DNA of 63,583 nt, the filler included, from Ministeria vibrans ATCC 50519 (taxonomy: Eukaryota > Protista > Filasterea), in the NCBI GenBank assembly GCA_943704425.1. It is 7 parts of 7 records of this genome, joined end to end, with 100 filler letters (N's around TTAATTAATTAA, not from the genome) between each part and the next. Parts side by side here need not be neighbours in the genome. Positions count along the whole stretch, not along the records: positions 1 to 29,700 come from CALSCP010002235.1; 6 more parts are not named here. One strand, given 5' to 3'. Of the stretch, positions 2,129-29,700 are shown piece by piece; positions within the stretch are counted from its first letter, which is position 1, and the number at the start of each line of letters is the position of its first letter. The notes beneath the pieces were generated by a model. That model ran no database searches. It was not told the DNA's origin and saw only the letters and a list, made by a program, of their open reading frames with translations. The position numbers and the translations under genes were made by a program.

Positions 2129-3832
2129 ATGCTCAACGTCAACCGAAGCGTCGACGACCCGTTCTACCGGTACAAGATGCCGCGTGTCATGGCAAAAGTA
2201 GAGGGGCGCGGAAATGGAATCAAAACCGGTACGGTCGCGTGTGGGAGAGAGAGATGACACAAGTGCAAAAAAAAAGTTGTCCACGCGTTCACGCATCTTA
2301 TCAACATCCTCTTCGCCCCTCTGGATCGCGCTTAGCATCCATCGCACTCGATTGTCTTCTTAAACTCCTCTCTACTTTCCCAGCGTGCATTTCGTATTTT
2401 TGATGAGCGCGTCAAAAAAAGGTTTCTGCTTCTTCTTTCTCCTCACTCATTCCCTTGTCTTGCCGTAGTTTTGCCCAACATTGTGGACGTCTGCAAGGCT
2501 CTCTCTCGCTCGCCAGCCTACGCCACCAAGTACTTTGGCTACGAATTGGGTGCACAGACGATCCTTGACACGCGAAACGACGTACTAATATTATTAAAAT
2601 TAATAATAGTAATAATAATAATAATAATAAACTTGATTTTCTTTTAGAAATATGTTGTCAACGGCAGGCATGAGGCGGATCGATTGCAGGAGATTCTCGA
2701 CGGCTTTATCAAGTCGTATGTGCTGTGCAACGAGTGCTCCAACCCCGAGACGGTGCTCTCGGTGCGTCACGAAAAGATCAAGGCAGCCTGCAAAGCATGT
2801 GGCGCCACGAGCGAAGTGAACATGCGCCACAAACTGTCGACGTACATTCTACGCTTCCCTCCCGGCACCGACCCATCCTCCGTGGCGAGTGGCGGTCCAA
2901 AGAAAGAGCGACGTGGCAAGAAGGAGAAGGAACAGGCTGCGTTGGCGGCCGAGGCGGACGCTGCAGCTGCCGCCGTGCAACAGGCCTCGAACAAGCACGT
3001 GAAGAGCAAGGGCAAGAAGGCGGCCGAGGCCGAGGACGAAGACGACGGTGGAGACTGGTCGCTGGACACGAGTGCCGAGGCGGTGAGCAAGCGCAAGGCA
3101 GCCCTTGAGGCTGGTTTGGGCGCTGCCGCACGTCTCGCTGCCTCTGACGACCTGTCTCTCAGCGAGAACGAACGCATGGAGAAACTGTTCAACTTTGCGA
3201 AGCGTTCTCTCTCACCCGACGGCGGTGGCTTCTCGTCGCTGAAGGTCCACGCCGAGGCGCAGCGCCTCGACGTTGTCGACAAGGGGGCAGGTGTCTTGCT
3301 CGGCGCCATTTTCACGGCAGATATTCGCAAGGAGGTGCCACGCTTTCGCAAGCTTCTTTTGCGCTTTACACAAGCGAATGAAAAGAGTCAGCGCTACTTC
3401 ATCGGCTGCCTCGAACGCTTCTTGGTGGCGCACAAACTCACAGGCAAGACCCACCTTGTGCTCAAGGCCTTCTACGACGCCGACGTGCTCACGGAGGAAG
3501 TCCTTCTCGCCTGGTCCGACAAACACTCCAAGAAGTACGTCGACGCCGCCGACGCCAATCGCATTCACGAAGCGTCCAAGCCTTTCATCGATTGGCTGCG
3601 CGAGGCCGATGAAGAGGATGACGACGACGACGACGACGACGACGACGATGTCGTGCAGTTCACGACTGCCCCCACGAGCGAGCCCACGTCCACCTCGGCC
3701 ACCACTACCAGTGGCAGCATGCCGAGCGTGCCCTCCTCCAATGCTGCGACAGCGCCGCCAACCACCACAGTTGTGTCTGAGGCAGTGGCTGCCGTTGCGG
3801 ACGACGATGACTTTGACATTGATGACATTTAA
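2129..3832 (+). CDS. EIF5: Eukaryotic translation initiation factor 5, 3 exons
   Basis: [33 protein letters not shown]; [11 protein letters not shown]; CNECSNPET...CKACG zinc ribbon; W2 domain ([25 protein letters not shown]); ends DFDIDDI. Confidence 0.97.
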
Positions 3833-5936: not shown

Positions 5937-8900
5937 ATGATCAAAGCTGTGGTCATTGCAATGGTCCTTCTGGGACTGGCCGGCTCAAGCATGGCGGGCG
6001 AGTACGACTGCGCTTCAATGCCCTGCGTCAACGGTGCCACTTGCGTTGTTGACGTGTCCAATGTCGGCTACACCTGCGCCTGTCTGCCGGGCTTCACTGG
6101 TACCCACTGCGAGCAGGACATTGACGAGTGTCTCTCGACGCCCTGCTTAAATGGTGCCACCTGCGTCGATGGCCCAACCCCCGACACATACTCATGCACG
6201 TGTCAGGCCGGGTACACGGGAAACAACTGCCAGACGGACATCGACGATTGTGCCACGGGCCCTTGTGTCTTCGGCACGTGCGTCGATCAGGTCAATGACT
6301 TTCTGTGCACATGTTCCCCTGGCTACACGGGTACCACTTGTGCAGACAACATTGACGACTGCGCATGCAACCCGTGCGCCAACGACGGTACCTGTCTCGA
6401 CGGCATCGTCTCGTACGGCTGCCTCTGCGTCTCAGGTACCACTGGTACTCATTGCGAGACCAACGTGGACGACTGCGCCTCCAACCCATGTACACCGAGT
6501 CAGACTGAGTCGTGCGTCGACGGCCTCAACTCCTACGTGTGCCGCTGTCTGCCTGGCTTCACAGGCGTCCACTGCGAGTCTCACATCCTCGAGTGTGCCT
6601 CAAACCCGTGTATGCATGACTCCACCTGCGTCGACGGTCTCGACTCCTGGAGCTGCCTTTGTGGTCCCGGCTACGAGGGTCCCATTTGCGAGACCGAAAT
6701 CGACGAGTGCGCCTCCTCACCCTGTACCAACGGCGGTACTTGCACCGACGGTATCGCCTCCTACACCTGTTCATGCATTACAGGCTACGCTGGTGACGAG
6801 TGTGAGACCGAAATCAACGAGGTATATTTTTTCAAAAAAAATAATAAGAGATCAATAATACAAACTTGTCACTACTCTTTTTTTTTNNNNNNNNNNTTTT
6901 TTTTTAGTGCGCTTCAAGCCCGTGCAGCAACGGCGGCACTTGCAGCGAAGGATTCAACTCGTTTTCTTGCACTTGCCTCTCAGGTACTACCGGCGTCAAC
7001 TGTGAGGAAGACATCGACGAGTGTGACTCGAGCCCGTGCACCAACGGTGGTAGCTGCGTCGAGTCGGGTACCTTTGACAGCTACTCCTGTCTGTGCCATC
7101 TCGCCTACACTGGTACACACTGCGAGAACGAAATCATCGAATGCGATTCGTCGCCCTGCGTTGTCAGTCAAACTGAGTCGTGCGTCGAGAACCTGGGCTC
7201 GTTCACGTGCCGCTGCCTTCCCGGCTACACGGGCACCCAGTGCGAGTCTGAGATTGACGAATGTGCCTCGGCGCCATGCACAAATGGCGGTACCTGCACA
7301 GACGACATTGACCAGTACTCGTGTACTTGCGTCGCCGGTTTCCAGGGTACGCACTGCCAGGAGGACGTCGACGAGTGTGCGTCCAACCCATGTCAGAACG
7401 GTGGTACCTGCTCCGAAGGTTCCATGGCCAACTTTTGGGAGTGCACTTGCGCCGCTGGCTGGACCGGCACTACTTGCAGCATCGATATTGACCACTGTAC
7501 GTCGCTTCCATGCCAGCATGCCGGTACGTGCCTCAACAACCCCTGGGGCGATGGCTACGCGTGCGTCTGTGCCGCCGGCTACACCGGTTTGCACTGCGAG
7601 ACCAACATTGACGAGTGTACCTCCAACCCGTGCCACAATGGTGCAGGCTGCAACGACGGTGTCGCCTCGTACACATGCACTTGCACCACCGGCTGGACGG
7701 GCACCCACTGTGAAACTGACATTCCCACATGCATGATGTCCGACTGCCTCAACGGCGGCACTTGCGTCGAGGGAATCGGTGCAATGCCCAACTCGTGCAA
7801 TTGCGCCGCCGGCTACACCGGTGAAATGTGTGAATCGCTCATTGACGAATGTGCCTCGTCACCTTGTGCCTACGGTGCCGACTGCGATGAGGGTGTCTTC
7901 CGTCCCAACGTGCCCCAGCCCAACACCGTATTCAATCCCGTCGAGCTGTCCACGCCAGGCCCCGCTCGCATTGTCGGCTGGAATTTTACCGTTGCTCATC
8001 CCATGACACTCACGCATCTTGGTACTTACGATCACGACAGCGACGGCCTTGCCCACGATCACATTGTGACCCTTTGGCACTCCAACTCGTCCCTCATCAC
8101 CTCGGCAACCATCGGCATGTCGACCAGCATGATCCACAATGGCTTCCGCTTTGAGTCCATTCCGCCTCTCTCCCTCGAGGTTGGCGCCACTTACGTGCTC
8201 ACATCGCTCTACCCGACGGTCGCCTCAACCAACGACCTCTACGTTCGATACGGCAACCCTTTCCCCGCCACGACACGTTTCACCTTCCACTCGCGCCTCC
8301 TGTGCGTCAGCTATGGCGGCCCCATCTCCAACACCTTCCCCGCGTGCGACGACAGCGACGAGGCACTCGGTCGCTTCGGTCCCATGTTCATCGAGGGCAC
8401 CCCCGAACTGCCCATCGACTACTACCGTTGCAACTGCCCCGCTGGCCTCACTGGCATCAACTGTCAGATCAACCTCGACGACTGCACCTCGTCGCCCTGC
8501 ACCAACAGCGGTACTTGCGTTGACGGCATTGTCTCCTACACTTGCACCTGCCCCGTTGGCTATACCGGTATTCATTGCGAGGAGGACATGGACGAGTGCA
8601 TCTCCATGCCCTGCCAGAACGGCGCCACATGTTCGCCAGGCACCGCCTCCTTTTCGTGCATGTGCATGCCCGGCTACGCCGGCACGCTCTGCGACCAGGA
8701 CATTGACGAGTGTGCCTCGGACCCCTGCCAGTATGGCGCTACCTGCCACGACTTTGTGAACGGCTACACGTGCACCTGTCAGAGCGGCTACACCGGCACC
8801 ACGTGCCAGAACGACATCAACGAGTGCACCTCGTTGCCCTGTGCCAACGGCGGCACCTGCACCGAAGGTGACTCATTTGCCGTCGAAGTTGACGGCACCT

Positions 8901-11900
8901 CGGATGTGGTCGCGACGGGACACCCGCGCATGATTGGATGGACATTCACCACGGTCACTGACTTTACGCCTCGTCGCTTGTGCGTCTACGACAGCGGCCA
9001 AGACGGTCTCGCCGGGTCGCACACAGTCGGTCTGTGGACCGTCACCGGCGACGAAATTGCCTCAGTCACTGTCACCACCTCGTCACCGCTCTTTGGTCAG
9101 TTCCGCTGCGAGACCATTCCCAACTTGCCTGTCCTCGCCGCCGGCGAGCACTGCATTCTCGGAGCCTACTACAGCGGTGCAGGCCTGGGCGATGCCTACA
9201 TTCACGACGACTCACCCATCCCCCCGGTGGGCTCCGTCTTTACTTTTGTCGAGAGCTACGTGTGCCTCGATCTCAGCGCCAGCGGCTACGGTTTCCCGCT
9301 CTGCTCCGACTTTGAGACGACCGAGGGCAACTTTGGGCCGTACATTGAGTACACCATTGGAGCCGGCAATGCCGACCAGTTTGTCTGCGATTGCCCGCCT
9401 GGCTATTCCGACGCACAGTGCGCGACCAACACTGACGAGTGCTCGTCGGACCCCTGCATGAATGGCGCCACATGCCACGACGGCATCAACAGCTACACCT
9501 GCTCGTGTACACCCGGCTTTGTTGGCACCCATTGCGAGAGCGACATCATTGAGTGTGCCTCCACACCCTGCCAGAACGGCGCCACCTGCAACGAAATCAC
9601 ACCCGGCTCGTTCACGTGCTTGTGCAGCGCTGGCTACACTGGTGCTCAGTGTCAGGTGGACATCAACGAGTGCGCTTCGTCGCCCTGTCTTAACGGCGCC
9701 CCGTGCAGTCAGGGAACTGCCGCCAACTATTGGGAGTGTACATGCTTGCCGGGCTACACCGGCACCCAGTGCGAGACGGACATTGACGATTGCGCAGGGT
9801 CGCCCTGTCAAAACGGCGGTACCTGCAGCGATGGTGTCTTCACTTTTACATGCGCTTGCGTTCCTGGCTACACTGGCCCTACGTGCGCAACGGACATTAA
9901 CGAGTGCTCGTCGACCCCCTGCGCAAATGGTGGCAGCTGTTCCACTCCCATTGTGAATGCGTTCGAGTGCAGCTGCCCCCCAGGATACACTGGTAATGTC
10001 TGCCAGACGGACATCAACGAGTGTAGCTCGTTTCCCTGCCTCAACGGTGCCACGTGCAGCACTCCTCAAGCGGCAGCCTTCTCGTGTGCCTGCGCTCCCG
10101 GCTACACTGGCAACCAGTGCCAGACGGACATCAACGAGTGCGCGTCAAACCCGTGTCATAACGCGGGCACGTGCAGTCAGCCTGTGCCGGGCCAGCACAG
10201 CTGTACCTGTGTTGCGGGCTACACCGGCACTCTGTGCGATATTGACATTAACGAGTGCTCCTCATCCCCGTGCACCAACGGTGGCACTTGCAGCCAAGGC
10301 ACTTCCGTTGATTTCTGGGAGTGCACTTGCGTCGCCGGTTTCACCGGCACTCAGTGTGAGGTCGACATCGACGAGTGTGCGTCGTCGCCCTGCACCAACG
10401 GCGGTACTTGCGACGAGGGTAGCATGGCCAACTTCTGGCAGTGCACCTGTGTCGCCGGTTTCACTGGCACCCAATGCGAGAGCGACATTGACGAGTGTGC
10501 GTCGTCGCCCTGCACCAACGGCGGTACTTGTAACGAGGGTAACATGGCCAACTTCTGGCAGTGCACCTGTGTCGCCGGTTTTACTGGCACCCAATGCGAG
10601 AGCGACATTGACGAGTGTGCTTCTTCCCCGTGCACCAACGGCGGCACTTGCGACGAAGGTAACATGGCGGACTTTTGGCAGTGTACCTGCAGCGCAGGCA
10701 CCACCGGACAAAACTGTGAGACGGACGTGGTTGAGTGCGCGAGCACGCCATGCCAAAACGGCGGTTCTTGTCATGAGGACGCGGGCCTGGGCAGCTTTTA
10801 CTGTGTTTGCATCCCGGGCTTTACTGGGGTCGACTGTGCCATCAACATCAACGACTGTCTGTCGCACCCTTGCCGCAACGGTGGCACTTGTGTCGACCTT
10901 GTCAATTCCTTCCATTGCCAGTGCACCAGCCCTTGGGAAGGTGTCCTGTGCGAAAGCGAGGTTGACGAGTGCAACTCGAACCCGTGCGCCAACGGCGGAA
11001 CCTGTACCGATCTCTTTGATGCCTTCTCGTGTGCCTGCGTCAACGGTTGGGAGGGTGTGCAGTGCGAGTCGCAAGTCAACGAGTGCTCGTCGTCCCCCTG
11101 CTCCAACGGCGCCACTTGTACCGACTACTCGGTTGTGCCGCCCAACATGGACACGGGTTACTGGGTAGGCTACAGCTGTACCTGTGCCAGCGGCTTTTCG
11201 GGTGTCCATTGCGAGACAGAGCTTGACGAGTGCGAATCGTCGCCGTGTGTCAACGGTGCCACTTGCATTGACATGGTTGACGCTTTCTTCTGCTCGTGCG
11301 TCGCCGGCTTCACCGGTGCCCAGTGCGAATCAATCCACGACGAATGCTCGTCGTCGCCATGCGAGAACGGCGCCACGTGTCTCAATGCCAATGCGCCTTT
11401 CCTCTCCGACATGTTCTCCACCGAAGGCTACAACACCATTGCGATCCAATCGACAGGCGTCGTCAACCCCATGGGCGCACCGGTTCTCTGGGGCTGGGAC
11501 CACTTTGGCATGCGCACACTCTTCCCGACCACCGCCAACTACTGGCGTCATGTGCGCTCCGGCAACACCTTCACCTGTGGCATCACCAAGGCGAACGGCA
11601 CCGTCGAGTGCTACGGCAACCCGGTTGTGACCGGTGCGGTGCCCAGCGGTGTCTTCACCCAGTTGGACGCCGACTGGACTCACGTGTGCGGTCTGAAGAC
11701 GGACGGCAAAGTCGAATGCTGGGGTGAGGCGGGTCGCATCACGCCCTTTGAAAGCTTCAGCAACTTTAAGCAGATTTGCACGGGCGAGACCCTCTCATGC
11801 GGCATCCGTGAAGACGGCACCTCCTTCTGCGGACGCCGTCCCGACCTCATTGGCATGTCGGGTCTGCCTGACATCACACCGCCGGTCAACTCGGAGTACT

Positions 11901-14900
11901 CGAGCATCACCTGCGGCAAGTACCACGCCTGCGGCCTGCGCATCGACACGCAACGTGTCGAGTGCTGGGGCGAGGACTACTTTGGGGTTGTGTCGGGCGC
12001 TCCCGCCACCACCCTTTTCAGCAATGTCGATGCGGGCGCACGTGTTACGTGCGGTGTCGAAGTGGGCTCGGGCAACGTCAAGTGCTGGGGTGAGACCTCG
12101 TATGGTGTCACCGGTGCGTGGCCGGATGCTCCCTACGAATATGTGCAGGCTGGCGAGCGCCACGGGTGTGCCGTGCACACCAATGGCTCGGTGACGTGCA
12201 TTGGCAAGGACGGTGTGGGCATTCCCTCGACGGTTGTGCCCGCCGGCCTCGTAGTTGCCGGCTACGGTGGCGAGACACGTCTCGACTTCTACGACTGTGT
12301 CTGCCCCATCGGCTACACGGGGGTCAACTGTGAGACCAATCTGGACGATTGTGACTCGTCGCCGTGCACCAACGGTGGCCAGTGCGTCGATGGTATCTGG
12401 TCGTACCATTGCGACTGCCCCAGCGGTTTCACTGGATCTCATTGCGAGTCGGATATTGACGAGTGTAGTTCGTCGCCCTGCTCCAATGGCGCCACCTGTA
12501 CCGATGGCGTCGACGGCTTTTTCTGCACGTGCGCCTCGGGCTTCACCGATGTGATCTGCTCGATGGAGATTGACGAGTGCGCCTCATCACCATGCACCAA
12601 CGCCGGCACGTGTAGCGACGCTCTTGATGGATTTGCCTGCGCCTGCCACTCGGGTTTCACCGGTGCTAGCTGCCAGACCGACATCAACGAGTGCGGATCG
12701 TTCCCGTGTGTCAACGGCGCCACCTGCCAGGACATGGTCGACGGCTTCAACTGCGACTGTGTGCCAGGCTATACTGGCATTCGCTGCGAGACAAACATCA
12801 ACGAGTGTGCGTCGCAGCCGTGCGTTAACGGCGCCACGTGCGACGACCAGATCAACCAGTTTGTGTGCATGTGCGTGCCCGGCTACACAGGCGTCCACTG
12901 CGAGACAGACATCAACGAGTGCGCCTCGAGCCCATGCTCCAATGGTGGCACCTGCGACGACCGCCTCAACCACTTCGTCTGCATTTGCGCCTCGGGCTTC
13001 ACCGGCTCGAGGTGCCAGACGGACATCAATGAGTGCGCCTCAGTACCCTGCCAGAATGGTGCAACCTGCACGGACGGCGTCGACGGCTACAGTTGTTTGT
13101 GTGTTCCTGGCTTCACCGGCATTGAGTGTGCCTGGCAAATTCAAGAGTGTGCCTCGTCGCCTTGCGTCAACGGTGGCTTCTGCATCGACAAACTCGATGC
13201 CTTTGAGTGCACCTGTCCCAACGGCTACTCGGGTGCTCACTGCGAGATTGACATTGACGAGTGCGCCTCGTCACCTTGCTACGCCGGGCAGGGATACTGC
13301 CACGACCTGCTCGACGGCTACAACTGTGCGTGCCACGACGGATTTGTTGGTGTGCACTGCGAGACGGACGTGGACGAGTGCGCCTCGTCGCCGTGCGACT
13401 CGATTGGTACGGACGGCTGCGAAAACCGCGTGCCATACTGGCACTGCCGTTGCAAGGCTGGCTTTTACGGCGTCCGTTGCGAGACCAACATTAACGAGTG
13501 TGCCTCAAACCCGTGCCGCAACGGTGGTGTTTGCAACGACGCTGTGGACGGCTACCATTGCACTTGTCCGCCCAACCATACTGGTTTTAACTGCGACAGC
13601 GATCTTACAGCCGTCTCGCCCATTCTCGACCATCCCACATCGTGCTCGTTCGAGACCGACCCGTCCCTCGGCTACGACATGTGCCGCACCATCTGGGGCT
13701 GGATTAACCGCGCCTCGTACGCCATCACCTACTCGGCCAGCACGCCCGAAAACGAATTCTCACCCGCTCCCACCTACCGCGGCCAGCCAGCAACCTTCTC
13801 GCCCGGTCGCGTCTTCTCGGCTCTCATTGTCGACGAGCCGTGCACCACGGACATTGTGCGCTGGACCATTGGCATGGAAACCACCACGGCTGGTGTTAAA
13901 CACATCAGCATGGAGTGCGGCGTGTGCGGCGGTTGCCGCAACGGCGGCTACTGCGACCAGTACACGCCGACCTGCATCTGTGCGCCCGGCTACACAGGCG
14001 GCGCCTGCGAGACAGACATTGACGAGTGCGCGTCGGAGCCGTGCCAGCATGCCTCCACCTGTGTCGATGGTGTCGACGGCTACCAATGCATCTGCTCCGC
14101 CGGCTTCACCGGCCCCAATTGCGAGTCGGACATTGATGAGTGCGCTTCGTCCCCTTGCTCGCTCATTGGCACGGCCACGTGCAACGACAACATCAACTAC
14201 TTCACGTGCACCTGCAAGCCGGGTTATGAGGGTGCTCTTTGCGAACTGAACACCAACGAGTGTGCCTCAGACCCATGCGACCCGCGTGGTACCATCGCCA
14301 ACGGCTGCGTCGACCTTGTGGCGCGCTGGCAATGTCAGTGCAAGACGGGCTACACGGGCTACCGTTGCCAGACGGACATCAACGAGTGCGCGTCGCAGCC
14401 TTGCCAACACGGCGGCTACTGTGGCGACGAGGAGGGACGCTTCCGCTGCTACTGTCTCCTCGGCTACACGGGCACTCGCTGCGAGACGGACATTAACGAG
14501 TGCGACTCGTCGCCATGCCGCAACGGTGCCACTTGTCATGACGTGCTCGCCGCCTTCCACTGTAACTGCGCGCCGGGCTTCACTGGTGTCCAATGTGAGC
14601 AGGAGATCAACGAGTGCGCCTCAAACCCCTGCTCACTCTTTGGCACCTGCTTCGACCTCATCAACGCATATGTGTGCCAGTGCGATGCGGGCCACGAGGG
14701 TGACCACTGCGAGATCAATCTGTGCTACCACACCGTGTGCAAGAATGGCGGTACCTGCTCAAACCCACTCGGCCGCGATGTGTTCTGCCAGTGTCTGCCC
14801 GGTTTCACCGGCGAGTTGTGCCAGACGGACATTGATGAGTGCGCGTCGTCGCCGTGCGATGCGCCTGGCACACACTTCTGCTACGACGAGGTGGACCGCT

Positions 14901-17900
14901 TCCGTTGCATCTGCAACCCCGGGTACACCGGCAACCGCTGTGAGGTTGAAATCAACGAGTGCGCCTCAAACCCGTGCCACAATGGTGCCACGTGCCTCGA
15001 TGCCATCGACTCGTACCTGTGCTACTGCGTGCCCGGCTACACCGGCACCCACTGCGAGACAAACATTCCCGAGTGTCTCAGCTCGCCGTGTCAGAATGGT
15101 GCCACGTGCAACGACCACGTCAACTCGTTCTCCTGCTCGTGCTCCATTGGCTACGCCGGCGACCTGTGCGAGACGCTCGTGGACGAGTGCGCCTCCAACC
15201 CGTGCATCAACCACCGCATGTGCTGGGACCGCCTTGGCTACTACGACTGCGAGTGCTTGCCCGGCTGGCGTGGCCAGCAGTGTGAGATCAACGTCGATGA
15301 GTGTGCCTCGAACCCCTGCAAGTATGGCGCGACGTGCATCGACCTTGTCAACGCCTACCGCTGCACATGCCCTCCAGGTCTCACCGGCACCAATTGCGAC
15401 GTTGAGATTGACGAGTGCCAGTCGTCGCCGTGCCTCGGCGGCTTTTGCACCGACGTCTTCAATGGATTCCTGTGCACGTGCCTCTCCGGATACACCGGTG
15501 TGTTGTGCGACGAGAATGCCAACGAGTGCGCGTCGAACCCTTGCCTTAACGGCGGCCAGTGCGTCGACCACTTCAACTTCTTCTCGTGCAGCTGCGCCAG
15601 TGGCTGGCAGGGACACTTGTGCCAGATCAACGTCAACGAATGCGACTCGTCGCCTTGTCAGCACTACGGCACCTGTACCGACCAAATTGACGGCTATACG
15701 TGCGCCTGCCACCCGGGCTTCACCGGTCCCAACTGCGACCTTGACTTTGACGAGTGCATTTCGAACCCGTGTCATAACGGCGGATCGTGCCGCAACGGCA
15801 TCGTCTCCTTCTCGTGCGACTGCCCCAGCGGCTGGACCGGCAATCTTTGCCTCGAGATTGACGAGTGTGCTTCGTCGCCGTGTCAAAACACAGGCACATG
15901 CGTCGACCAGCTTGGCGGTTTCTATTGTAACTGCCCTCTGGGCACTGCCGGACCTCTGTGCCAGATCAACTTCCCCGACTGTGTCAGCGCACCTTGCCTC
16001 AACGGCGCTACCTGCGTCGACGGCCTGACCACCTACTCGTGTGCGTGCGCCCCCGGCTTTACCGGCACCCATTGCGAGGAGGACATCAATGAGTGTGCCT
16101 CGAATCCATGCGAAAATGGCGCGACGTGCAACAACAACATTGGCGAGTTTGTGTGCGACTGTGCGCCCGGCTGGGAGGGTGTCCAGTGCAACGTTGACAC
16201 GGACGAGTGTCTGTCGGCCCCGTGTCTCTTCGGCGCGTCATGTGTCGACCACCTCAATGGATTCTCGTGCGAGTGCAGCGCAGGCTACACCGGCGCCGTG
16301 TGCCAGACTGACATTGACGAGTGTGCCTCGTACCCGTGTGTCCACGGAGGAACCTGCCACGATCACATTGACGGCTATGTTTGCTCGTGCCCCAACGGCT
16401 TCCTGGGCATTCACTGCGAGACGGACATTGACGAGTGTGCCTCGGCTCCGTGCCAGAATGGCGCCGCCTGCATTGACCTCGCCAACAGCTACTCGTGCAC
16501 GTGCCTCGCCGGCTTTGAGGGCACGCACTGCGAGACCAACATTAACGAGTGTGCTTCGGCACCGTGCGAGAATGGCGCCACATGCCACGACCAGATCAAT
16601 GGCTACACGTGCGCCTGTGTGCCAGGCTACACGGGCGCCGAATGCCAGACGGACATCAACGAGTGTGCTTCGTTCCCGTGCCAGAACGCTGCCACATGCA
16701 TCGATCAGGTGAACGGCTACTCGTGTGTGTGCGCGCCCGGATGGAACGGCGTCCACTGCGAGATCAACATCAACGAGTGCGCTTCGGTGCCGTGCCAGAA
16801 CGGCGCCACCTGCAACGACCGTGTCAACAACTACGTCTGTGTGTGCGCCGCCGGCTACACTGGCACGCACTGCGACGCAGACATCAACGAGTGTGCATCA
16901 AACCCCTGCGTACACGGCAGCTGCAGCAACCTGCTTGATCATTTTGTGTGCACATGTGAGCCTGGCTGGATGGGCAGCCGCTGTGACTCAGACACGGATG
17001 AGTGTGCGTCCGACCCGTGCCACGCCGACAATACGGCCATGTGTGACAATAGCCTCAATGCCTTCAAGTGCGTGTGCAAGCCGGGCTTTGAGGGTACCTT
17101 GTGCCAAACGGAGATCAACGAGTGCGCCACCTACCCGTGCGCCAACGGTGGCATCTGCTTCGACGGAGTGGCCGAGTACCGATGCGTGTGTCAGCCCGGC
17201 TGGACTGGCACTCAGTGCAAGATTGACGTGCTCGAGTGCGCGTCGCAGCCCTGCCAGAATGGAGCAACATGCGTCGAGGGACAGAACGTCTTTGGATGCG
17301 AATGTGTCGCGGGCTACACGGGCGCCACGTGTGCCGTCGACATTAACGAGTGTGCGTCGCAGCCTTGTCAGAATGGCGCCACCTGCGTCGATCACCTCGA
17401 CGGCTACTCGTGCCAGTGCCGCCCGGGCTGGACCGGTGTCACCTGTGGCGATGATGTCCCCGAGTGCCAAAGCTCGCCGTGCCAGAACTTTGCGACATGT
17501 TTTGAGGGCACCAACGAGTTTGCTTGCGCCTGCGCCACTGGCTTTACGGGCACTCTCTGCGAGATCAATATCGACGAGTGTGCCCCGCAGCCCTGCGCCA
17601 ACGGCGGTACCTGCCTCGACGTCGTCAACGGCTACAACTGTGTGTGTGTTGCGGGTTTCATTGGCTCATGGTGCAAGATCAACATTGACGAGTGCGCCTC
17701 TCAGCCGTGCACCAACGGAGGCCACTGCTACGACCGTGTCAATGGCTACGACTGTGAATGCCCGCTTGGCTATACGGGCGCCCAGTGCGAGAGCGAGATC
17801 CAAGAGTGCGCATCGATGCCGTGCCAGAACACGGGCACGTGCCACGACCTTGTCGATGGCTACTCGTGCGAGTGTCCGCTCGGTGTGGTCGGTGTGCACT

Positions 17901-19627
17901 GTCAGACGGACATTGACGAGTGTGCGTCGTCGCCGTGTGCCAATGGCCAGTGCAACGATCACTTTGGCAGCTTTACCTGCACTTGCAACGCCGGTTGGAC
18001 TGGCTTCACCTGTGCTTTTGACATTATGGAATGCCAGTCGTCACCGTGCCAGAACGGCGCCACATGTGTCGAGGGCACCGACGCCTACCGCTGTCTCTGC
18101 CTCGACGGCTTTGACGGCGACTACTGCCAGTTCAACCGCGACGACTGTGCTTCGCAGCCGTGTGCCAATGGCGCCACCTGCGAGGACCACTTTGGCTACT
18201 ACACGTGCACGTGTGCGCTTGGGTTTGTCGGCACCGAGTGTTTGGTGAACGTTGATGAGTGCGCTTCGCAGCCGTGTGTGCACGGTGCATGTGTCGACGG
18301 TGTCAACGGTTTCACTTGCTCGTGCGACCTTGGCTACTACGGACTGCTGTGCGACTCGCTTATCGACTACTGTCTGTCGAATCCGTGTTCGTCGCACGGC
18401 ACCTGCGACTCTCGCACCGGTGGCTACGTGTGTGTGTGCGCAACGGGCTTTTCGGGCCACGATTGCTCGACTCTGACAAGCTCGTGCTCGCCCAACCCGT
18501 GTGCCAACTCGGGCCATTGCTCCGACACGGGTCCCGGTACCTTCTCGTGTCTGTGCGTCAAGGGCTTTGCGGGGCCCACGTGTCAAGTGAACATTGACGA
18601 GTGCGCGTCGCAGCCGTGCCTCAACGGCGCCTCGTGCGTCGACGGTGTCAACGGCTACACGTGCACCTGTGCGCCCGGCTATGAGGGCACGTTGTGCGAG
18701 CAGGAGACGAATGAGTGTGCGTCGCAGCCGTGCCAGCACCAAGGCACGTGCTCGGACCATCTCAACGGCTACTCGTGTCTGTGCCGCTCGGGCTTCTACG
18801 GTGCCCACTGCGAAAACGACATTGACGAGTGTGCGTCGAAGCCGTGCCAGAATGGCGCCACCTGCCAGAACCGTGACAACAGTTTTGTGTGTGATTGCGT
18901 GCCGGGCTACGGTGGCAGTACGTGCGCCGTCGATATCAACGAGTGTGCGTCGTCGCCCTGTGGCTTCCACGGTGTCTGCAGCGACCACATCAATAGCTTC
19001 TCGTGTGCCTGCTACGTGGGCCATTCGGGAGATTTGTGCGAGATTGACTTATCGCTGCAGACGGGTGGCAGCGTGGGCGCCACGACGGCTGCTTCATCGG
19101 CGGGCGTCACTGCCGGCATTGTTGTCGGTGTGCTCATTGCTCTGCTTGTCGTCCTGGTGCTTGTAAGGCGTCGCCAAAAATCGCGCGACCAGGTTGGCGA
19201 AGTGTCGCTGCCGTCCACGCCGGCAGCGCGCGACGAGGGAGTTGACACTCTCTTTTCGGCCTGGACCGCTCCTAATGCCGCTGCCGCGCGTCGTCCGCGA
19301 TCCGCTGACAGTGACTTGTCGTCGGGTGCAAGCAGCGATGTGTTGTCGGACACGCAGTCGTCTGTGTACGGCGCGGCGCTGGGCGCAGCAGTGTTGCCCT
19401 CGTCAAGAGGTAGCTCGAGAAGATCATCGGTGGCGTCCACCAAGATGGCCGTGTCTCCCAGCGTCACCGACACCATTGACAATGATGCCGAGAACCTGTG
19501 GAGCTCGCCCGAGCGCAAGGCCAAGTCCAACGGCTCGCGCGAGCCCGCCATGCTCTTTGGTGCCATCGACTATGACGACTACGAGCAGGACAGTGATTTC
19601 GACGCGTCAGAGGAGACGCGTCTGTGA
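5937..19627 (+). CDS. Giant type I membrane protein, ~4,534 aa, ~93 Notch/fibropellin-type Ca-binding EGF repeats plus four non-EGF domains, TM helix, Ser-rich tail
   Basis: Signal peptide [20 protein letters not shown]; exon 1 5937-6821, phase-0 GT-AG intron (contains N gap), exon 2 6908-19627 in frame with the 4067-aa ORF; repeats D(I/V)(D/N)ECxSxPCxNG(G/A)TC...CxCxxG(Y/F)TGxxC counted by eye; TM ~19112-19165 followed by RRRQK. Confidence 0.93.
10250..10730 (+). repeat. About four near-identical 120-bp tandem units, each one 40-aa EGF repeat
   Basis: Sequence at 10381-10500 and 10501-10620 nearly identical; flanking units slightly more diverged. Confidence 0.9.
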
Positions 19628-22867: not shown

Positions 22868-24407
22868 ATGATCACCAGACTGGCGCTGGCGAGAGCGTGT
22901 GGGTTGACGCGTTGGCAATCGGCTGCAAACGTGATGCAACATCCGGCATCGAATATGCGCGCATTTCGTCGAGCCTTTATCTCGCTTGCCCGCGAGCCGG
23001 TGGCCGTCACCTCTGCCGTAGACAGTCGTGAAATCCAAGTGGCAGCTGCCCGCGCCGCCGCTGCGTCCGCCGTGGCGCGAATGCAGCAGACAGAGAGTGC
23101 GGCGCCTTCCGTCGACATGCCGCTGTCGTCAACGAGCGAGCCACGCGCCTCGCCGTCGACTGCCCTGGAGAACAGCACATTCATGGGCATGTCTCCCGAC
23201 TTCCCGTGTCTTCAGCGCGAGCAGCTGCGCAACAACGTCGTCGCCGAGCCAACGGTAACCCCTCACTCACACACACACACACACACACAAACACACACTC
23301 AAGGTGTCTGTGTCGCATCCTCTCACCCGCCATGCTTGTTTGTGTGCAGTATGACAATGTTGTGAGTGGCTATGAGATATTCCAGTCCAACGAACCGTTT
23401 CAGTGTGAATGGGGAGGGGTACTCCCCGAAGTGTCCGTGGCGTATGAGACGTGGGGCGAACTGAATGCGTAAGATGCATTAATTGGTCTAGTCAATATTA
23501 ATTTTTTTTTGTCATTCTTCAGAGACAAATCCAATGCTATTCTGATCCACACGGGACTGTCGGCGAGCTCTCATGCGAAGAGCCACGCAAAGAACCCGCG
23601 GGCGGGCTGGTGGGAGAAGTTTATCGGACCGGGGCTGGCAGTGGACACGGACAAGTTCTTTGTGGTGTGCACCAATGTGCTCGGGGGCTGCTATGGCACG
23701 ACAGGTCCCGCCTCGGTGAACCCAACGACGGGCGACGCGTATGCCATGACCTTTCCGTTGATCACCGTGCGCGACATGATTGACGTGCAGCTGCGACTGC
23801 TTGACTCGCTGGGCATCGCGACCCTCCATGCATCCGTCGGCGCCTCATTGGGCGGCATGCAGTCCCTCCAGCTTGCCGCACGCGCGCCCCATCGGACCCG
23901 TCGCCTTGTCAGCATCTCTGCCGCCGCACGCTCACACCCTCTCAGCATTGCTGTGCGCCATCTGCAGCGCAAGTCGCTTATGACCGACCCCAAGTGGAAC
24001 CACGGCAACTATTACGGTCAGGCACATCCCCACGCAGGTACACGTACATAGAGAAAGGAGGGAGAAAGAAACAGTGATAGAGAGAGAGAGAGAAGCTATA
24101 GAGAAATCAAAGGATGCAGAACAGACTAATAGATCATCTCTAACATGCCTCTTTCTACACCAGGTATGAAGCTTGCGCGGCAACTGGCAACCATCTATTA
24201 CAGATCGGGTCCAGAGTGGGAGATGCGCTTTGCAAACGACCGCATCAACCCCTCCGCCGCCCCCTCCTTCTGCCCCGACTTTCTTATCGAGTCTTACATT
24301 GACCATCAGGGCGAGCAGTTTTGTCTCCAATACGACCCCAACAGTCTGCTCTACATCAGCAAGGCAATGGACATATTTGATCTCGGAAAGTCGTCCGCCG
24401 ACCCTCA
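22868..24407 (+). CDS. MetX-family alpha/beta-hydrolase acyltransferase, closest to fungal Cys2-type serine O-acyltransferase; C-terminus not visible
   Basis: Arg/Ala-rich mitochondrial-type leader; [44 protein letters not shown], nucleophile [29 protein letters not shown]; segment with catalytic Asp/His absent. Confidence 0.85.
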
Positions 24408-24501
24408 GTACGTCCAAATTCCACTCACAATTTTCTTTTCTATCACTTTGTTTCTTTCGTTCTTCTCTCACACACACTCTCTCTTTATCACTTTGTTTCT
24501 T

Positions 24502-24562
<61 letters not shown>

Positions 24563-24680
24563 CTTTGTTTTTTTTCCTCCCTCCCTCCTTTCTCTCTCTC
24601 TCTATCACTTTGTTTCTTTTTCCCTCCCTCCCTCCTTTCTCTCTCTCTATCACTTTGTTTCTTTCGTTCTTCTCACTCAC

Positions 24681-24784
<104 letters not shown>

Positions 24785-24846
24785 TCTCCTATTCTCCTAT
24801 TCTCCTAATTACATTAACACCACCCTCCTTCTCTCAACTTTATCAG

Positions 24847-25563
24847 GTGTTTGGGTTCGCTGGGGACAGCAACATCGGGCGCATTGCGTTTCCTGCAGTG
24901 CAAGCAGTCCCTTCCTTTGCCACTTCCTTTGGTGATATGTTTGGTGATGATCCTGAGACTGTTGCGCAGATGGCCTGTCTCATTCCTTGTGCTGTTGATC
25001 AGGATCCGTAAGTCGACTCATCTTTACTCAGCAGCCAATCACAATAACTCCAACTCAAATTCACACACACAGTCGATAATTCTATCACCCACAGCCAATG
25101 ACCCCTTTTTTTTCTCCAGCTACTTCCGCCTCACTCGTGACGTGGCTCCTGCCTTGGGCTATGTCAAACCCTCTCTCCTTCACAGGTTTATACGTTTCCA
25201 CTCACTTTTCACCTCTCTCACTCACTCTCTTTCGATCTCGGTTTTGTAATAGCAAATTCTTCCCAGCTCTTCAGGGCAGTCAGAGCAAGATGAGTTCTTC
25301 TGACGGCACTTCGTCCATTTTCCTGACAGACTCTCCCGATGAGATCAAACAAAAGGTACCGTCTCAAATCACACCAATTCTAGAGCTTTACATTTTTTTT
25401 CTTTTCTCTTTGTTACTCTCTTCTTTTTCGTCTTTCTCACTTTGTTTCTCCCACGTTGTTTATTTCTCCTTTCTTGTCTTTCTCACTTTGTTTCTCTCAT
25501 TTTCTTTCTCCTTTCTCCGTTCTCGCCTTTCTTTCTCACACACTTTGACTCTTTCTCCTCTCT

Positions 25564-25656
<93 letters not shown>

Positions 25657-26108
25657 GATTCATACGCATGCATTCAGTGGAGGAGGTGTGACGAAGAAGG
25701 AGCACGAAAGACTGGGCGGAGACTGTGAGCGAGACGTGTCGTTTCAGGTGAGAAGAAGGCAAACCGTGTTAGGGGTGATAGGATTGTCGTTAGGGTTAGG
25801 GTGAGGGGATTTTAATGACACGGAAGCTGATCTTTTTTTTCTTCTTTGTTTGTTTGTAGTACTTGCGCTTCTTCCTTGATGATGATGATGAACTTGAGCG
25901 CATTCGTCAGGAATACTCATCGGGTCGTATGACAACATTTGAGCTCAAAGGTACATTTGTTTGTTGTGTCACTTTGGAGAATTAATACTCTGCCGTAGAA
26001 ATTCTGGTGGGAGTTCTGCAGAAGCTAGTTGGAGAGCACCAGGCACGCCGGGCGGTTGTGACGGATGAGGAAGTGCGCTATTTCATGACTCATCGCAAGA
26101 TGATTTGA
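24847..26108 (+). CDS. WARS: Cytosolic-type tryptophanyl-tRNA synthetase, C-terminal half only
   Basis: [54 protein letters not shown]; HIGH-motif N-terminal half missing. Confidence 0.9.
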
Positions 26109-26385: not shown

Positions 26386-27897
26386 ATGTCTCGTCCGCCA
26401 CTCCCCTCCCGGCCCACCGGCACGGGCCCGCCTCCCCTTGCCGGCAAGCCAAACGCCCCTCCACCCGTGCTCTCTAAGAAGCCCGGTGCGCCTCCGCCCG
26501 TCTCCGCACGACCGAAAGTGAGCACAAAGAAAGAGAGAGAGAGAGAATGAGAGGCAAAAAAAAAAAGAAAGACAAAAACTGAAGGAAAGGAGTGAAATTT
26601 GCTAACGGCCATCGCCTGTGTGTCTCGCTCAAGGCCACTTCCAAGCCAGGTGGAGCTGCCCCGCCAACGCAGGCGTCCGCTGCGGCTGCCTTGGGACCGC
26701 CGCCGTCGCTGAAGCCCAGACCGGCAGTTGCCTCTGCGCCCGTTGCCTCTCCCGCGCCTGCGCCCAACCCCCTCCCCGCGCAGAGGCCGCCGCCCAAGCC
26801 CAAGCCTGCAGCACCCGCCGCACCGCAGCCAAGCGCCACTGTCATGTACGACTTTGCAGCGGAAGCCGATGACGAACTCAGCGCCGCGACAGGGGCCACA
26901 GTGCGCCTCTTGGGCCAGCCCGACGACGACTGGTTCGAGGCTGAGTTAGACGGAGTGCGCGGGCGCATTCCCATCAGCTTTGTCGAAGTGACAGTGCCTC
27001 TCGAGGCTCAAACAGCAGGCGCACCAGCTGCACAAGCAGAAGCAGCACAAGCGCCTGCCTCCAGCACAGCACCCAAAGCGAACAGCCTCGCCGCCATCCT
27101 TGCCGCTGCCAACCGTCCTTCTCAGGCAGCAGCTGAATCACCAGCAGCTGCAGAAGTAGCGTCCGACGGTCCTCCATCTCTGCCTCCACTCCCGGGCCCA
27201 TACCACCCACTGTACCACTACGTTTTTGCGCGCCACAAACCACGCGCAGTGTGCACTCAGCCATTCCAGGCAGAGGCTGAAGACGAGCTTAACCTACATG
27301 TCGGCGACACCGTGCTGCTAGTGGGACGCATCAGCGACGCATGGCTCAAGGTAACGTCACAACATCCAGCGAAACGAGACATCTGATCCCACCTTCACTC
27401 TCTAATAATATTAGGGGAAAGTCGCGTCGGGTTCCTGTGGAATGTTTCCTCAAGGTACCCAAGTGAAGTGAACTGACGAACCACCACCCACTTACACACG
27501 CGCATACAGAATTTGTGACCATTCATCAAGCCCTGCCCAACGACGACGGCACAACTCCCTTCACAACCGACGATGACGACGAAGCCACCTCCACCACCAC
27601 TCCCGCCGCAACAACTACCACTGCCACTGCGCCCCCTCCCGCCTCTGCCAACGATCCTCCGCCCAGTACGTCTTTTCTCACGCCATATTCACATGCACTC
27701 ACTGCTCTGTAGTGCCTGGCATCGGATTTGCAGTGCTGGAGAACTCAGTGTTTGGCAGTGACTCGCAAGGAACTCTCACAGCGCAGAGAGGGGAAATGCT
27801 GACTGTGCTGCGTGAGAACGGCAACTGGTACGAGTGCGAGCAGGATGGTATTGTCGGTCACGTTCCAAAGGCCCAGTGTGAGTTTATTCCACACTGA
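26386..27897 (+). CDS. Proline-rich adaptor with three SH3 domains (SH3D19-like architecture)
   Basis: Pro-rich N-terminus; SH3-1 ATVMYDFAAEADDELS...DWFEAELDGVRGRIPISFV; SH3-2 FQAEAEDELNL...AWLKG...GMFPQEFV; SH3-3 GEMLTVLRENGNWYEC...GHVP. Confidence 0.85.
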
Positions 27898-29201: not shown

Positions 29202-29651
29202 GTATGATTGTTTTTGTTTTTTTTTGCGACATGTTAAAATTGTTAGGGATTTTACCAGAGTGTCTGTTTTTTCCTGTTTGCACCAACGAACGTTGCACGC
29301 CTCACAGCTCTCTGCCGGTGTAATAAAACACATGACAGCGTATCCCTGTGCGAGTGCGTCGCCGAGGATTGCTCCCGCGTTCTCTCGCTGTGCCCCAATG
29401 GCTCACTCGCATGCGCATTTCAAACACGCGCCGGTTTCGCATCTGCGCTTCCCTCGCGCCCTTCTGTTGCGTATCCCCCACCCTCGCGTTGACGATGTGT
29501 GTGTGCGTGTGTTTGGTGTGTTTGCCATGCTTTCTTGTGCGCTCTTTTGGATTTGGCTCTGTGAATTCGCTCTTCTCTCTCTATCACTTTGCTCTGTCAC
29601 ACACACGTTGTTTCTCTCTCACACTTTGTTCCTTTCTCCCTTCTCTCTCTC

Positions 29652-29700
<49 letters not shown>

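Follow-up and report, generated by a model that had tools for sequence, protein, structure and literature searches.

Can a single epidermal growth factor (EGF) repeat hold an entire domain between two of its cysteines and still serve as a link in an array? This question is raised by a gene of the filasterean Ministeria vibrans ATCC 50519 (GenBank assembly GCA_943704425.1), located at positions 5937-19627 of the analyzed stretch of DNA (hereinafter the window; 63,583 nucleotides composed of 7 joined parts, the first of which, positions 1 to 29,700, comes from CALSCP010002235.1). The gene encodes a predicted product of 4534 amino acids (aa) with 93 EGF repeats, three of which are interrupted between the third and the fourth cysteine by inserts the size of whole domains.

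Split repeats and the insertion point

The repeats were counted with a regular expression walk over the 4534-aa product (the joined two-exon protein was used for counting, and the exons were searched as two separate sequences). Of the 93 repeats, 89 have a Cys3-Cys4 spacing of 8-12 residues, and the four outliers are repeats no. 16 (181 residues), no. 20 (175 residues), no. 37 (305 residues) and no. 35 (19 residues). The corresponding features are as follows:

7850..8464, plus strand: split EGF no. 16, from Cys1 to Cys6, host of insert 1, with EGF profile positions 3-21 and 21-37 on either side
7898..8413, plus strand: insert 1, 172 aa, DUF4082-type β-sandwich with a predicted PHR-like fold
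8825..9421, plus strand: split EGF no. 20, host of insert 2, delimited by the spacing and the EGF profile halves
8870..9370, plus strand: insert 2, 167 aa, paralog of insert 1 (about 29-34% identity)
11084..11212, plus strand: EGF no. 35, with a 12-aa hairpin extension at 11129-11164 and profile pieces 2-20 and 22-37
11345..12331, plus strand: split EGF no. 37, host of insert 3, delimited by the spacing and the EGF profile halves
11390..12277, plus strand: insert 3, 296 aa, predicted disulfide-rich RCC1-like (CRINKLY4-like) β-propeller

With a profile hidden Markov model (HMM) of the 89 ordinary repeats, each of the split repeats is recovered as two complementary pieces, the first one running from position 2-4 to position 20-21 and the second one from position 20-22 to position 37; thus, exactly one repeat is split at each insert. 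The summed scores of the halves are 41-43 bits, within the 25-73.5 bits range of the ordinary repeats, and the Pfam EGF model covers positions 1-14/15 on the N-terminal halves and 16/20-31 on the C-terminal halves. The break point is located after C3-x-x-G and before D-x-(F/Y)-x-C4, that is, at the tip of the main hairpin. The split hosts contain six cysteines with the EGF/hEGF spacing, and the host signature (C1-x4-C2-x5-C3 ... C4-x-C5-x8-C6, with G-x-x-G/aromatic) is found in both halves of repeats 16, 20 and 37. All the remaining long Cys-Cys gaps in the protein lie within the inserts or within a single 108-aa domain described below.

An earlier note on this DNA, made from the sequence alone, had described repeats of about these numbers as split by 170-300 aa, always in the Cys3-Cys4 loop, and had placed an additional mini insert of ~12 aa at the same site near 11125-11170. 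The repeat numbers prove to be exact, the spacings and the complementary profile halves confirm the site, the mini insert corresponds to the hairpin extension of repeat 35, and the coordinates given in that note agree within a few bases with the insert limits derived from the profile.

The inserts as coding sequence

The gene consists of two exons separated by a short intron:

5937..6821, plus strand: exon 1, with the ATG, signal peptide and first EGF repeats, its translation ending in ...EINE directly before the GT at 6822
6822..6907, plus strand: intron, phase 0, GT-AG, 17% GC, with a T-run and an assembly N gap inside; the frame picks up with CASSPC at 6908
6908..19627, plus strand: exon 2, encoding the remainder of the 93-EGF ectodomain followed by the transmembrane (TM) helix and cytoplasmic tail, and ending with the stop codon

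The open frame at 7424-19627 extends in frame upstream to 6908, and the intron of 86 nucleotides (nt) is AT-rich. The inserts have a GC content of 60-62% and a GC content at third codon positions (GC3) of 0.73-0.77, compared to a GC3 of 0.72-0.78 in the EGF-coding DNA and to 17% GC in the intron. The preferred codon is the same in the inserts and in the EGF exons for 16 of 17 amino acids, and across each insert, the EGF frame is the sole open frame. Because GC3 and codon choice match those of the EGF exons, the inserts are most plausibly coding, that is, translated in frame rather than removed as introns; splicing of the inserts, which the earlier note had named as one observation that would undo its proposal, is thus contradicted by exon-like composition, exon-like codons and the single open frame. 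The product is predicted to be a giant type I membrane (surface) protein that begins with a signal peptide, continues with 93 Notch-type EGF repeats and ends with a TM helix and short tail.

Guest domains

For insert 1, the Pfam search identified similarity to DUF4082 (PF13313; E = 6e-5, 22.9 bits), and insert 2 matches the same family with E = 7e-4 and 20 bits (gathering cut-off, 28.4 bits). DUF4082 is also matched by 11 of 18 genomic paralogs of these inserts, with the best E of 8e-12. A profile derived from the alignment of the 18 paralogs and searched against representative proteins at E ≤ 1e-3 retrieved 8265 of these, including bona fide DUF4082 proteins (e.g., P0080). The inspected matches are bacterial in character, namely secreted proteins of ~210 aa with PEP-CTERM-like tails and, additionally, proteins with myxobacterial-type Cys-rich repeats; the best 150 of the 8265 matches are almost all bacterial. 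Judging by these profile matches, inserts 1 and 2 and their paralogs are divergent members of the DUF4082 family or its close relatives. In a structural comparison (VIA), the folds closest to the AlphaFold model of insert 1 are the PHR domains of MYCBP2 and BTBD2 (Z 10.6), followed by lectin-like, carbohydrate-binding module (CBM) and phage baseplate sandwiches. No match was obtained when the insert profiles were compared with PDB sequences, and a broader protein-family lookup with insert 1 gave sub-threshold leads only, to DUF4082 and PHR. Among the matching proteins, P0065 (1567 aa, apparently bacterial) contains EGF, RCC1_2 repeats and DUF4082 in series, un-nested; it combines the same three domain types as the window protein and may hint at the source or a shared function of the guests.

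Insert 3 is matched by the Pfam RCC1_2 family with E = 1.3e-13 and 50.7 bits (cut-off, 22 bits) in 3 stretches, and contains six blade motifs, each with a Cys pair, as well as an N-terminal segment, from which we infer seven blades. With the confidently predicted core of the insert 3 model as the query, the best Foldseek match is the CR4/ACR4 ectodomain (E = 1e-15, 23-26% identity), followed by UVR8, RCC1 and BLIP-II. Both the profile and the model indicate that insert 3 is an extracellular RCC1/CRINKLY4-like propeller.

Recurrence in the genome

We searched the genome of this organism (29.7 Mb in 2860 contigs) for further copies. For insert 1, there are 28 six-frame matches, and in ~20 of these, C.S.PC.NGG.C is located upstream, followed by 175-195 aa and then by (F/Y)xCxCxxGxxGxxC; a few others lie at a protein start or adjoin an intron. 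Because ~20 of the 28 paralogs have the same flank pattern, chance is excluded as the source of the shared insertion site. Insert 3 has a nested counterpart as well, a second propeller of ~345 aa with 25% identity to it, located between CSSTPCQHGGSC and CMCPAGFSGLQC in another giant gene. Scanning 170 kb of other EGF-rich loci revealed 368 ordinary repeats and further split ones, including those that host a distinct insert family, denoted type B, with 8 nested copies of 196-209 aa at the same Cys3-Cys4 site. The nested propeller, type B and singleton domains identified outside the window gene are:

L029:1375-2409 (G000:C2236), minus strand: second nested RCC1/CRINKLY-like propeller, in a split EGF of a 5664-aa open frame
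L035:7408-8073, L036:5709-6368, L038:938-1597, L038:2081-2740, L038:3104-3769, L045:5349-6032 and L045:7545-8228, minus strand: type B inserts
L041:4753-5451, plus strand: type B insert
L040:5004-5702, plus strand: singleton 209-aa insert in a split EGF

The type B family is characterized by the motifs DFSPFKRS, GFVD, GW, WDG.S, CH and RPV, and has at least 21 genomic copies, 8 of which are confirmed as nested. Type B has no Pfam match, no PDB sequence match and no lead in the broader protein-family lookup, and shows no profile similarity to the DUF4082-type inserts (hhalign probability 1.5%). The singleton insert likewise has no Pfam match and is not related to the other insert families by profile comparison. 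Another candidate, L041:6079-6864, was rejected as a nested insert: by sequence reading, it is a LamG-like domain lying between repeats. On a careful count, the hairpin site appears to have been colonized independently at least three or four times, with subsequent duplication of the composite module; the count is kept this low because paralogs share ancestry.

Two further observations concern individual copies. At locus L009 (G000:C2236:59583-63047), an in-frame stop (VAGY*SASC) interrupts an otherwise intact EGF just downstream of the nested module, which could be either a sequencing error or a recent pseudogenizing change. A near-identical copy of the nested module at locus L005, with two substitutions seen, is present on a metagenome contig of 2332 bp (L030; ENA ERZ23497376, scaffold_4724) that carries the predicted protein P0014; thus, this organism or a very close strain occurs in the metagenome sample ERZ23497376.

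In other organisms, word-index protein searches with the module, the whole open reading frame and the 18-sequence alignment found no nested module, but these searches are insensitive and missed even P0014, a fragment from this same organism, so that the negatives reflect the word filter, or the exclusion of near-identical records, rather than absence. Similarly, a single-protein metagenome scan yielded no relative, again with insensitive searches that possibly left out close relatives. Nested copies in other eukaryotes could also lie below the best 150 of the 8265 profile matches.

Predicted closure of the host repeat and continuity of the rod

Structure prediction for segments comprising an insert and its flanking repeats, EGF(n-1)-insert-EGF(n+1), had been suggested in the earlier note. 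An AlphaFold model of EGF15, the split EGF16 and EGF17, based on an alignment of 12 paralogs, has a mean predicted local distance difference test score (pLDDT) of 74.5, with 67-77 for the EGF16 halves, and strands 54-57 and 235-238 take the normal positions of the hairpin strands. In a Foldseek search, the whole model superposes on Notch fragments of three repeats, the alignment being broken by one long gap; for Notch EGF11-13 (7alj), the template modeling (TM) score is 0.75, target-normalized, with a root mean square deviation (rmsd) of 3.0 Å. With VIA, 113 of 113 residues of Notch-1 EGF21-23 could be aligned, over residues 3-288 of the model (Z 11.2); for Notch EGF11-13, the alignment covers 114 of 120 residues (Z 11.0, 39% identity). 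Because the model superposes on contiguous Notch EGF triplets, EGF16 is predicted to re-form around its guest and the rod to continue through it. The chemistry is consistent with closure because only the Cys2-Cys4 bond spans the insertion point.

The rod had also been proposed to be stiffened by calcium. The strict calcium-binding EGF (cbEGF) consensus, that is, (D/N)-x-(D/N)-(E/Q)-C1 with D/N at C3+2 and an aromatic residue at C4-2, is found in 39 of the 93 repeats, which backs the proposal only in part; each of the split repeats, however, misses at least one position. EGF16 lacks two positions, EGF20 has Glu at C3+2 and EGF37 lacks the first D/N, although the aromatic residue at C4-2 is present in all three.

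Proposed arrangement and alternatives

Taken together, these observations make it very probable that the product of the gene is a giant type I surface protein in which three EGF repeats host guest domains at the hairpin tip, the host repeats close, and the guests are displayed from the rod. Under this model, the Cys1-Cys3 bond would lie wholly within the N-terminal half and the Cys5-Cys6 bond wholly within the C-terminal half, with Cys2-Cys4 alone bridging the halves, so that the host repeat could close around the guest at its base. The inserted domain would then project sideways, and EGF(n-1), EGF(n) and EGF(n+1) would keep their usual head-to-tail packing. Judging from their folds, the guests may be ligand-binding modules, for sugar or protein, each positioned at a set height on a stalk used in adhesion or recognition. 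Many duplications of the composite unit of half-EGF, guest and half-EGF have taken place in the genome. The hairpin tip looks like a permissive grafting point that has been used repeatedly, as it is in laminin, because at least three or four unrelated guest families occupy the same site.

Several points weigh against this interpretation. Both DUF4082-type inserts of the window score under the Pfam gathering threshold, the nested module was seen in this organism alone, in cross-species searches of low sensitivity, and none of the three split repeats has the complete cbEGF consensus. Disulfide pairing and closure depend on one AlphaFold model of moderate confidence from 12 paralogs, and AlphaFold would tend to assemble EGF-like halves anyway. 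A model of EGF36-38 with the propeller, for which the alignment contained 2 sequences, has a pLDDT of 49.7, with the EGF parts under 50, and is uninformative on closure. The earlier notion that the inserts branch sideways from an unbroken rod is supported in part, by the nested, translated domains and by the EGF15-17 model.

The alternative that bears on closure is that the inserts are translated but the two halves of the host stay separate as disulfide-stapled stubs, with the guest interrupting or hinging the rod. We consider it unlikely. Closure of the split repeat is a prediction from a model in which the pLDDT is 43-68 for the residues that directly follow Cys3 and for those that directly precede the C-terminal half, the propeller model carries no information on the host repeat, and the laminin γ1 short arm bends at the presumed L4 position in low-resolution data (PMC5338690). 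Separate stubs, however, would leave Cys2 of the N-terminal half and Cys4 of the C-terminal half unpaired unless these two are bonded to each other; the full canonical sequence, including the aromatic residue at C4-2, is retained in both halves of every copy; and the superposition on Notch triplets extends over all three repeats. Moreover, in laminin β2, an LF domain lies between LE5 and LE6 and yet the flanking LE domains pack like contiguous ones, as is also predicted for L4 (PMC5338690).

Much less probable is that the inserts are unrecognized introns, or are otherwise untranslated, so that the mature protein would be an unbroken array of EGF repeats. Introns do occur in this genome, including one directly after the N-terminal half in the paralog at locus L024. 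The verified intron of this gene, however, is short and AT-rich, whereas the inserts span 500-890 nt and resemble exons in GC content and codons, with only the EGF frame open across them; they belong to protein families with strong profile matches, their paralogs have diverged to 25-40% protein identity and yet are all open, and the metagenome gene call P0014 runs straight through one nested module. That unrelated coding sequence was pasted into the EGF array by an assembly or scaffolding artefact is hardly credible. The assembly is fragmented, with N gaps, one of which falls within the intron of this very gene, but the insert junctions and their surroundings are free of Ns, more than 30 sites on many contigs show this junction in diverged sequence, and it is found on the independent metagenome contig too.

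Beyond this gene, the evidence is evenly balanced on the broader proposition that the Cys3-Cys4 hairpin tip is a general grafting site, used independently by at least three or four unrelated families (the DUF4082/PHR-like sandwich, the CRINKLY-like propeller, the Pfam-less family of ~200 aa and the singleton), with the composite modules amplified to at least 50 copies across many giant surface proteins. If true, this would be a principle of domain architecture not described for 6-Cys EGFs. An EGF array is usually pictured as a string of beads in which other domains occupy the gaps between beads; here, the scaffold would be a bead. A natural, apparently permissive insertion point, used repeatedly, in a disulfide-knotted module of 40 residues would be of use in protein engineering, e.g., for mounting binders on rigid stalks. 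For annotation, the consequence is that domain callers report two EGF fragments and overlook the host repeat. The occurrence of such modules in a unicellular relative of animals, at the same site as in laminin, bears on the assembly of laminin-type and Notch-type architectures before or alongside the origin of animals, and a guest family with mostly bacterial proteins among its top matches (DUF4082), together with a CRINKLY-like propeller, raises the question of where the passenger domains came from.

Other features of the gene and its surroundings

Two features complete the description of the protein:

13595..13915, plus strand: non-EGF domain of 108 aa with Cys residues, located between repeats 48 and 49 in the ordinary arrangement
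19112..19165, plus strand: TM helix, with weak Pfam matches to TM segments, then RRRQK and an acidic, Ser-rich tail of 153 aa

The 108-aa domain has only a weak, sub-threshold Pfam match (S_locus_glycop, E = 0.003); it sits between repeats, and therefore the gene uses both the ordinary and the nested arrangement. The EGFs, the three inserts and this domain fully account for the ectodomain.

The genes flanking the EGF gene are ordinary eukaryotic ones, namely those for eIF5 (W2 and eIF-5_eIF-2B domains), an α/β hydrolase, a fragment of a class I W/Y tRNA synthetase and an SH3-domain protein (positions 2684-3829, 23509-24048, 25098-25400 and 26592-27383 of the window). Long (CT)n-type microsatellites, which translate as LSLSLS, occupy 24300-25700 and 29500-29700 and look like filling of apparent introns and intergenic DNA of these neighbors. 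Elsewhere in the genome, there are three integrin-β genes (G000:C749:7094-7843, C376:53094-53858 and C2390:41136-41972) and T-box matches at two loci (C1301:12448-13469 and C1244:34326-35432), and the genome search produced no match for the chlorophyll a/b-binding (light-harvesting) protein or ApiAP2. This gene content suggests a unicellular relative of animals, a holozoan of the filasterean or ichthyosporean grade.

Comparison with known systems

Each of the guest domains has relatives in other settings. In the best 150 representatives of the 8265 profile matches (259 domains), no DUF4082 domain outside this organism lies inside an EGF; these domains are stand-alone, in tandem or beside other domains. 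The PHR domains of MYCBP2 (PAM/Highwire/RPM-1) and BTBD1/2 share the β-sandwich of insert 1, with Z of 10.6 and 9.5 and an rmsd of 3.0 Å over 130-139 residues, but the identity is 12-13%, there is no Pfam PHR match and the PHR proteins are cytoplasmic, so that the resemblance is one of fold only. The propeller of CRINKLY4/ACR4, the best structural match to insert 3, is likewise extracellular, of the RCC1 type and equipped with a Cys pair per blade; in CR4, however, it is N-terminal, followed by a TNFR-like region and a kinase, and lies outside any EGF, whereas insert 3 is nested (in a model of low confidence outside the blades).

The array itself resembles those of Notch, Crumbs and fibropellin, which also consist of many hEGF/cbEGF repeats; the Notch triplets are 36-43% identical to the modeled segment in structural alignments, and the window protein is likewise a predicted type I membrane protein. 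No LNR/NRR or ANK match was found in the ectodomain or in the 153-aa tail, and the protein is not a Notch receptor because it is devoid of these modules. In Notch, Crumbs and fibropellin, extra domains are located between repeats, whereas in the protein described here, the repeat itself hosts the nested domains. The earlier note had cited only such proteins as background, with extra domains between repeats, which is incomplete in that it omits the laminin precedent: in laminin, L4 domains occupy a position between Cys3 and Cys4 within an LE domain (PMC5338690).

The laminin case is the closest one. The L4 domain of laminin and perlecan (laminin IV type A, Pfam Laminin_B) is a globular β-sandwich of ~180-200 aa at the same Cys3-Cys4 site as here, and its LE host has 1-3, 2-4 and 5-6 disulfides, a pattern that is predicted for the present hosts, and belongs to a long tandem array (PMC5338690); this array has been shown to stay regular around the LF domain and is predicted to do so around L4 (PMC5338690). 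Laminin_B (PF00052) gave no match in the guests at E ≤ 1 or E ≤ 0.1 and was not found in the genome, in a search in which control genomes gave no match either. The arrangement could be convergent with laminin LE/L4 or related to its origin. The host here is a 6-Cys repeat of the Notch/cbEGF type as opposed to the 8-Cys LE of laminin, the guests come from several unrelated families, including a propeller of the 7-blade type, as opposed to Laminin_B, and the composite module has multiplied to dozens of copies, far more than in laminin. Thus, the nested-EGF principle itself is already known from laminin, and it is the hosts, the guests and the number of copies that differ here.

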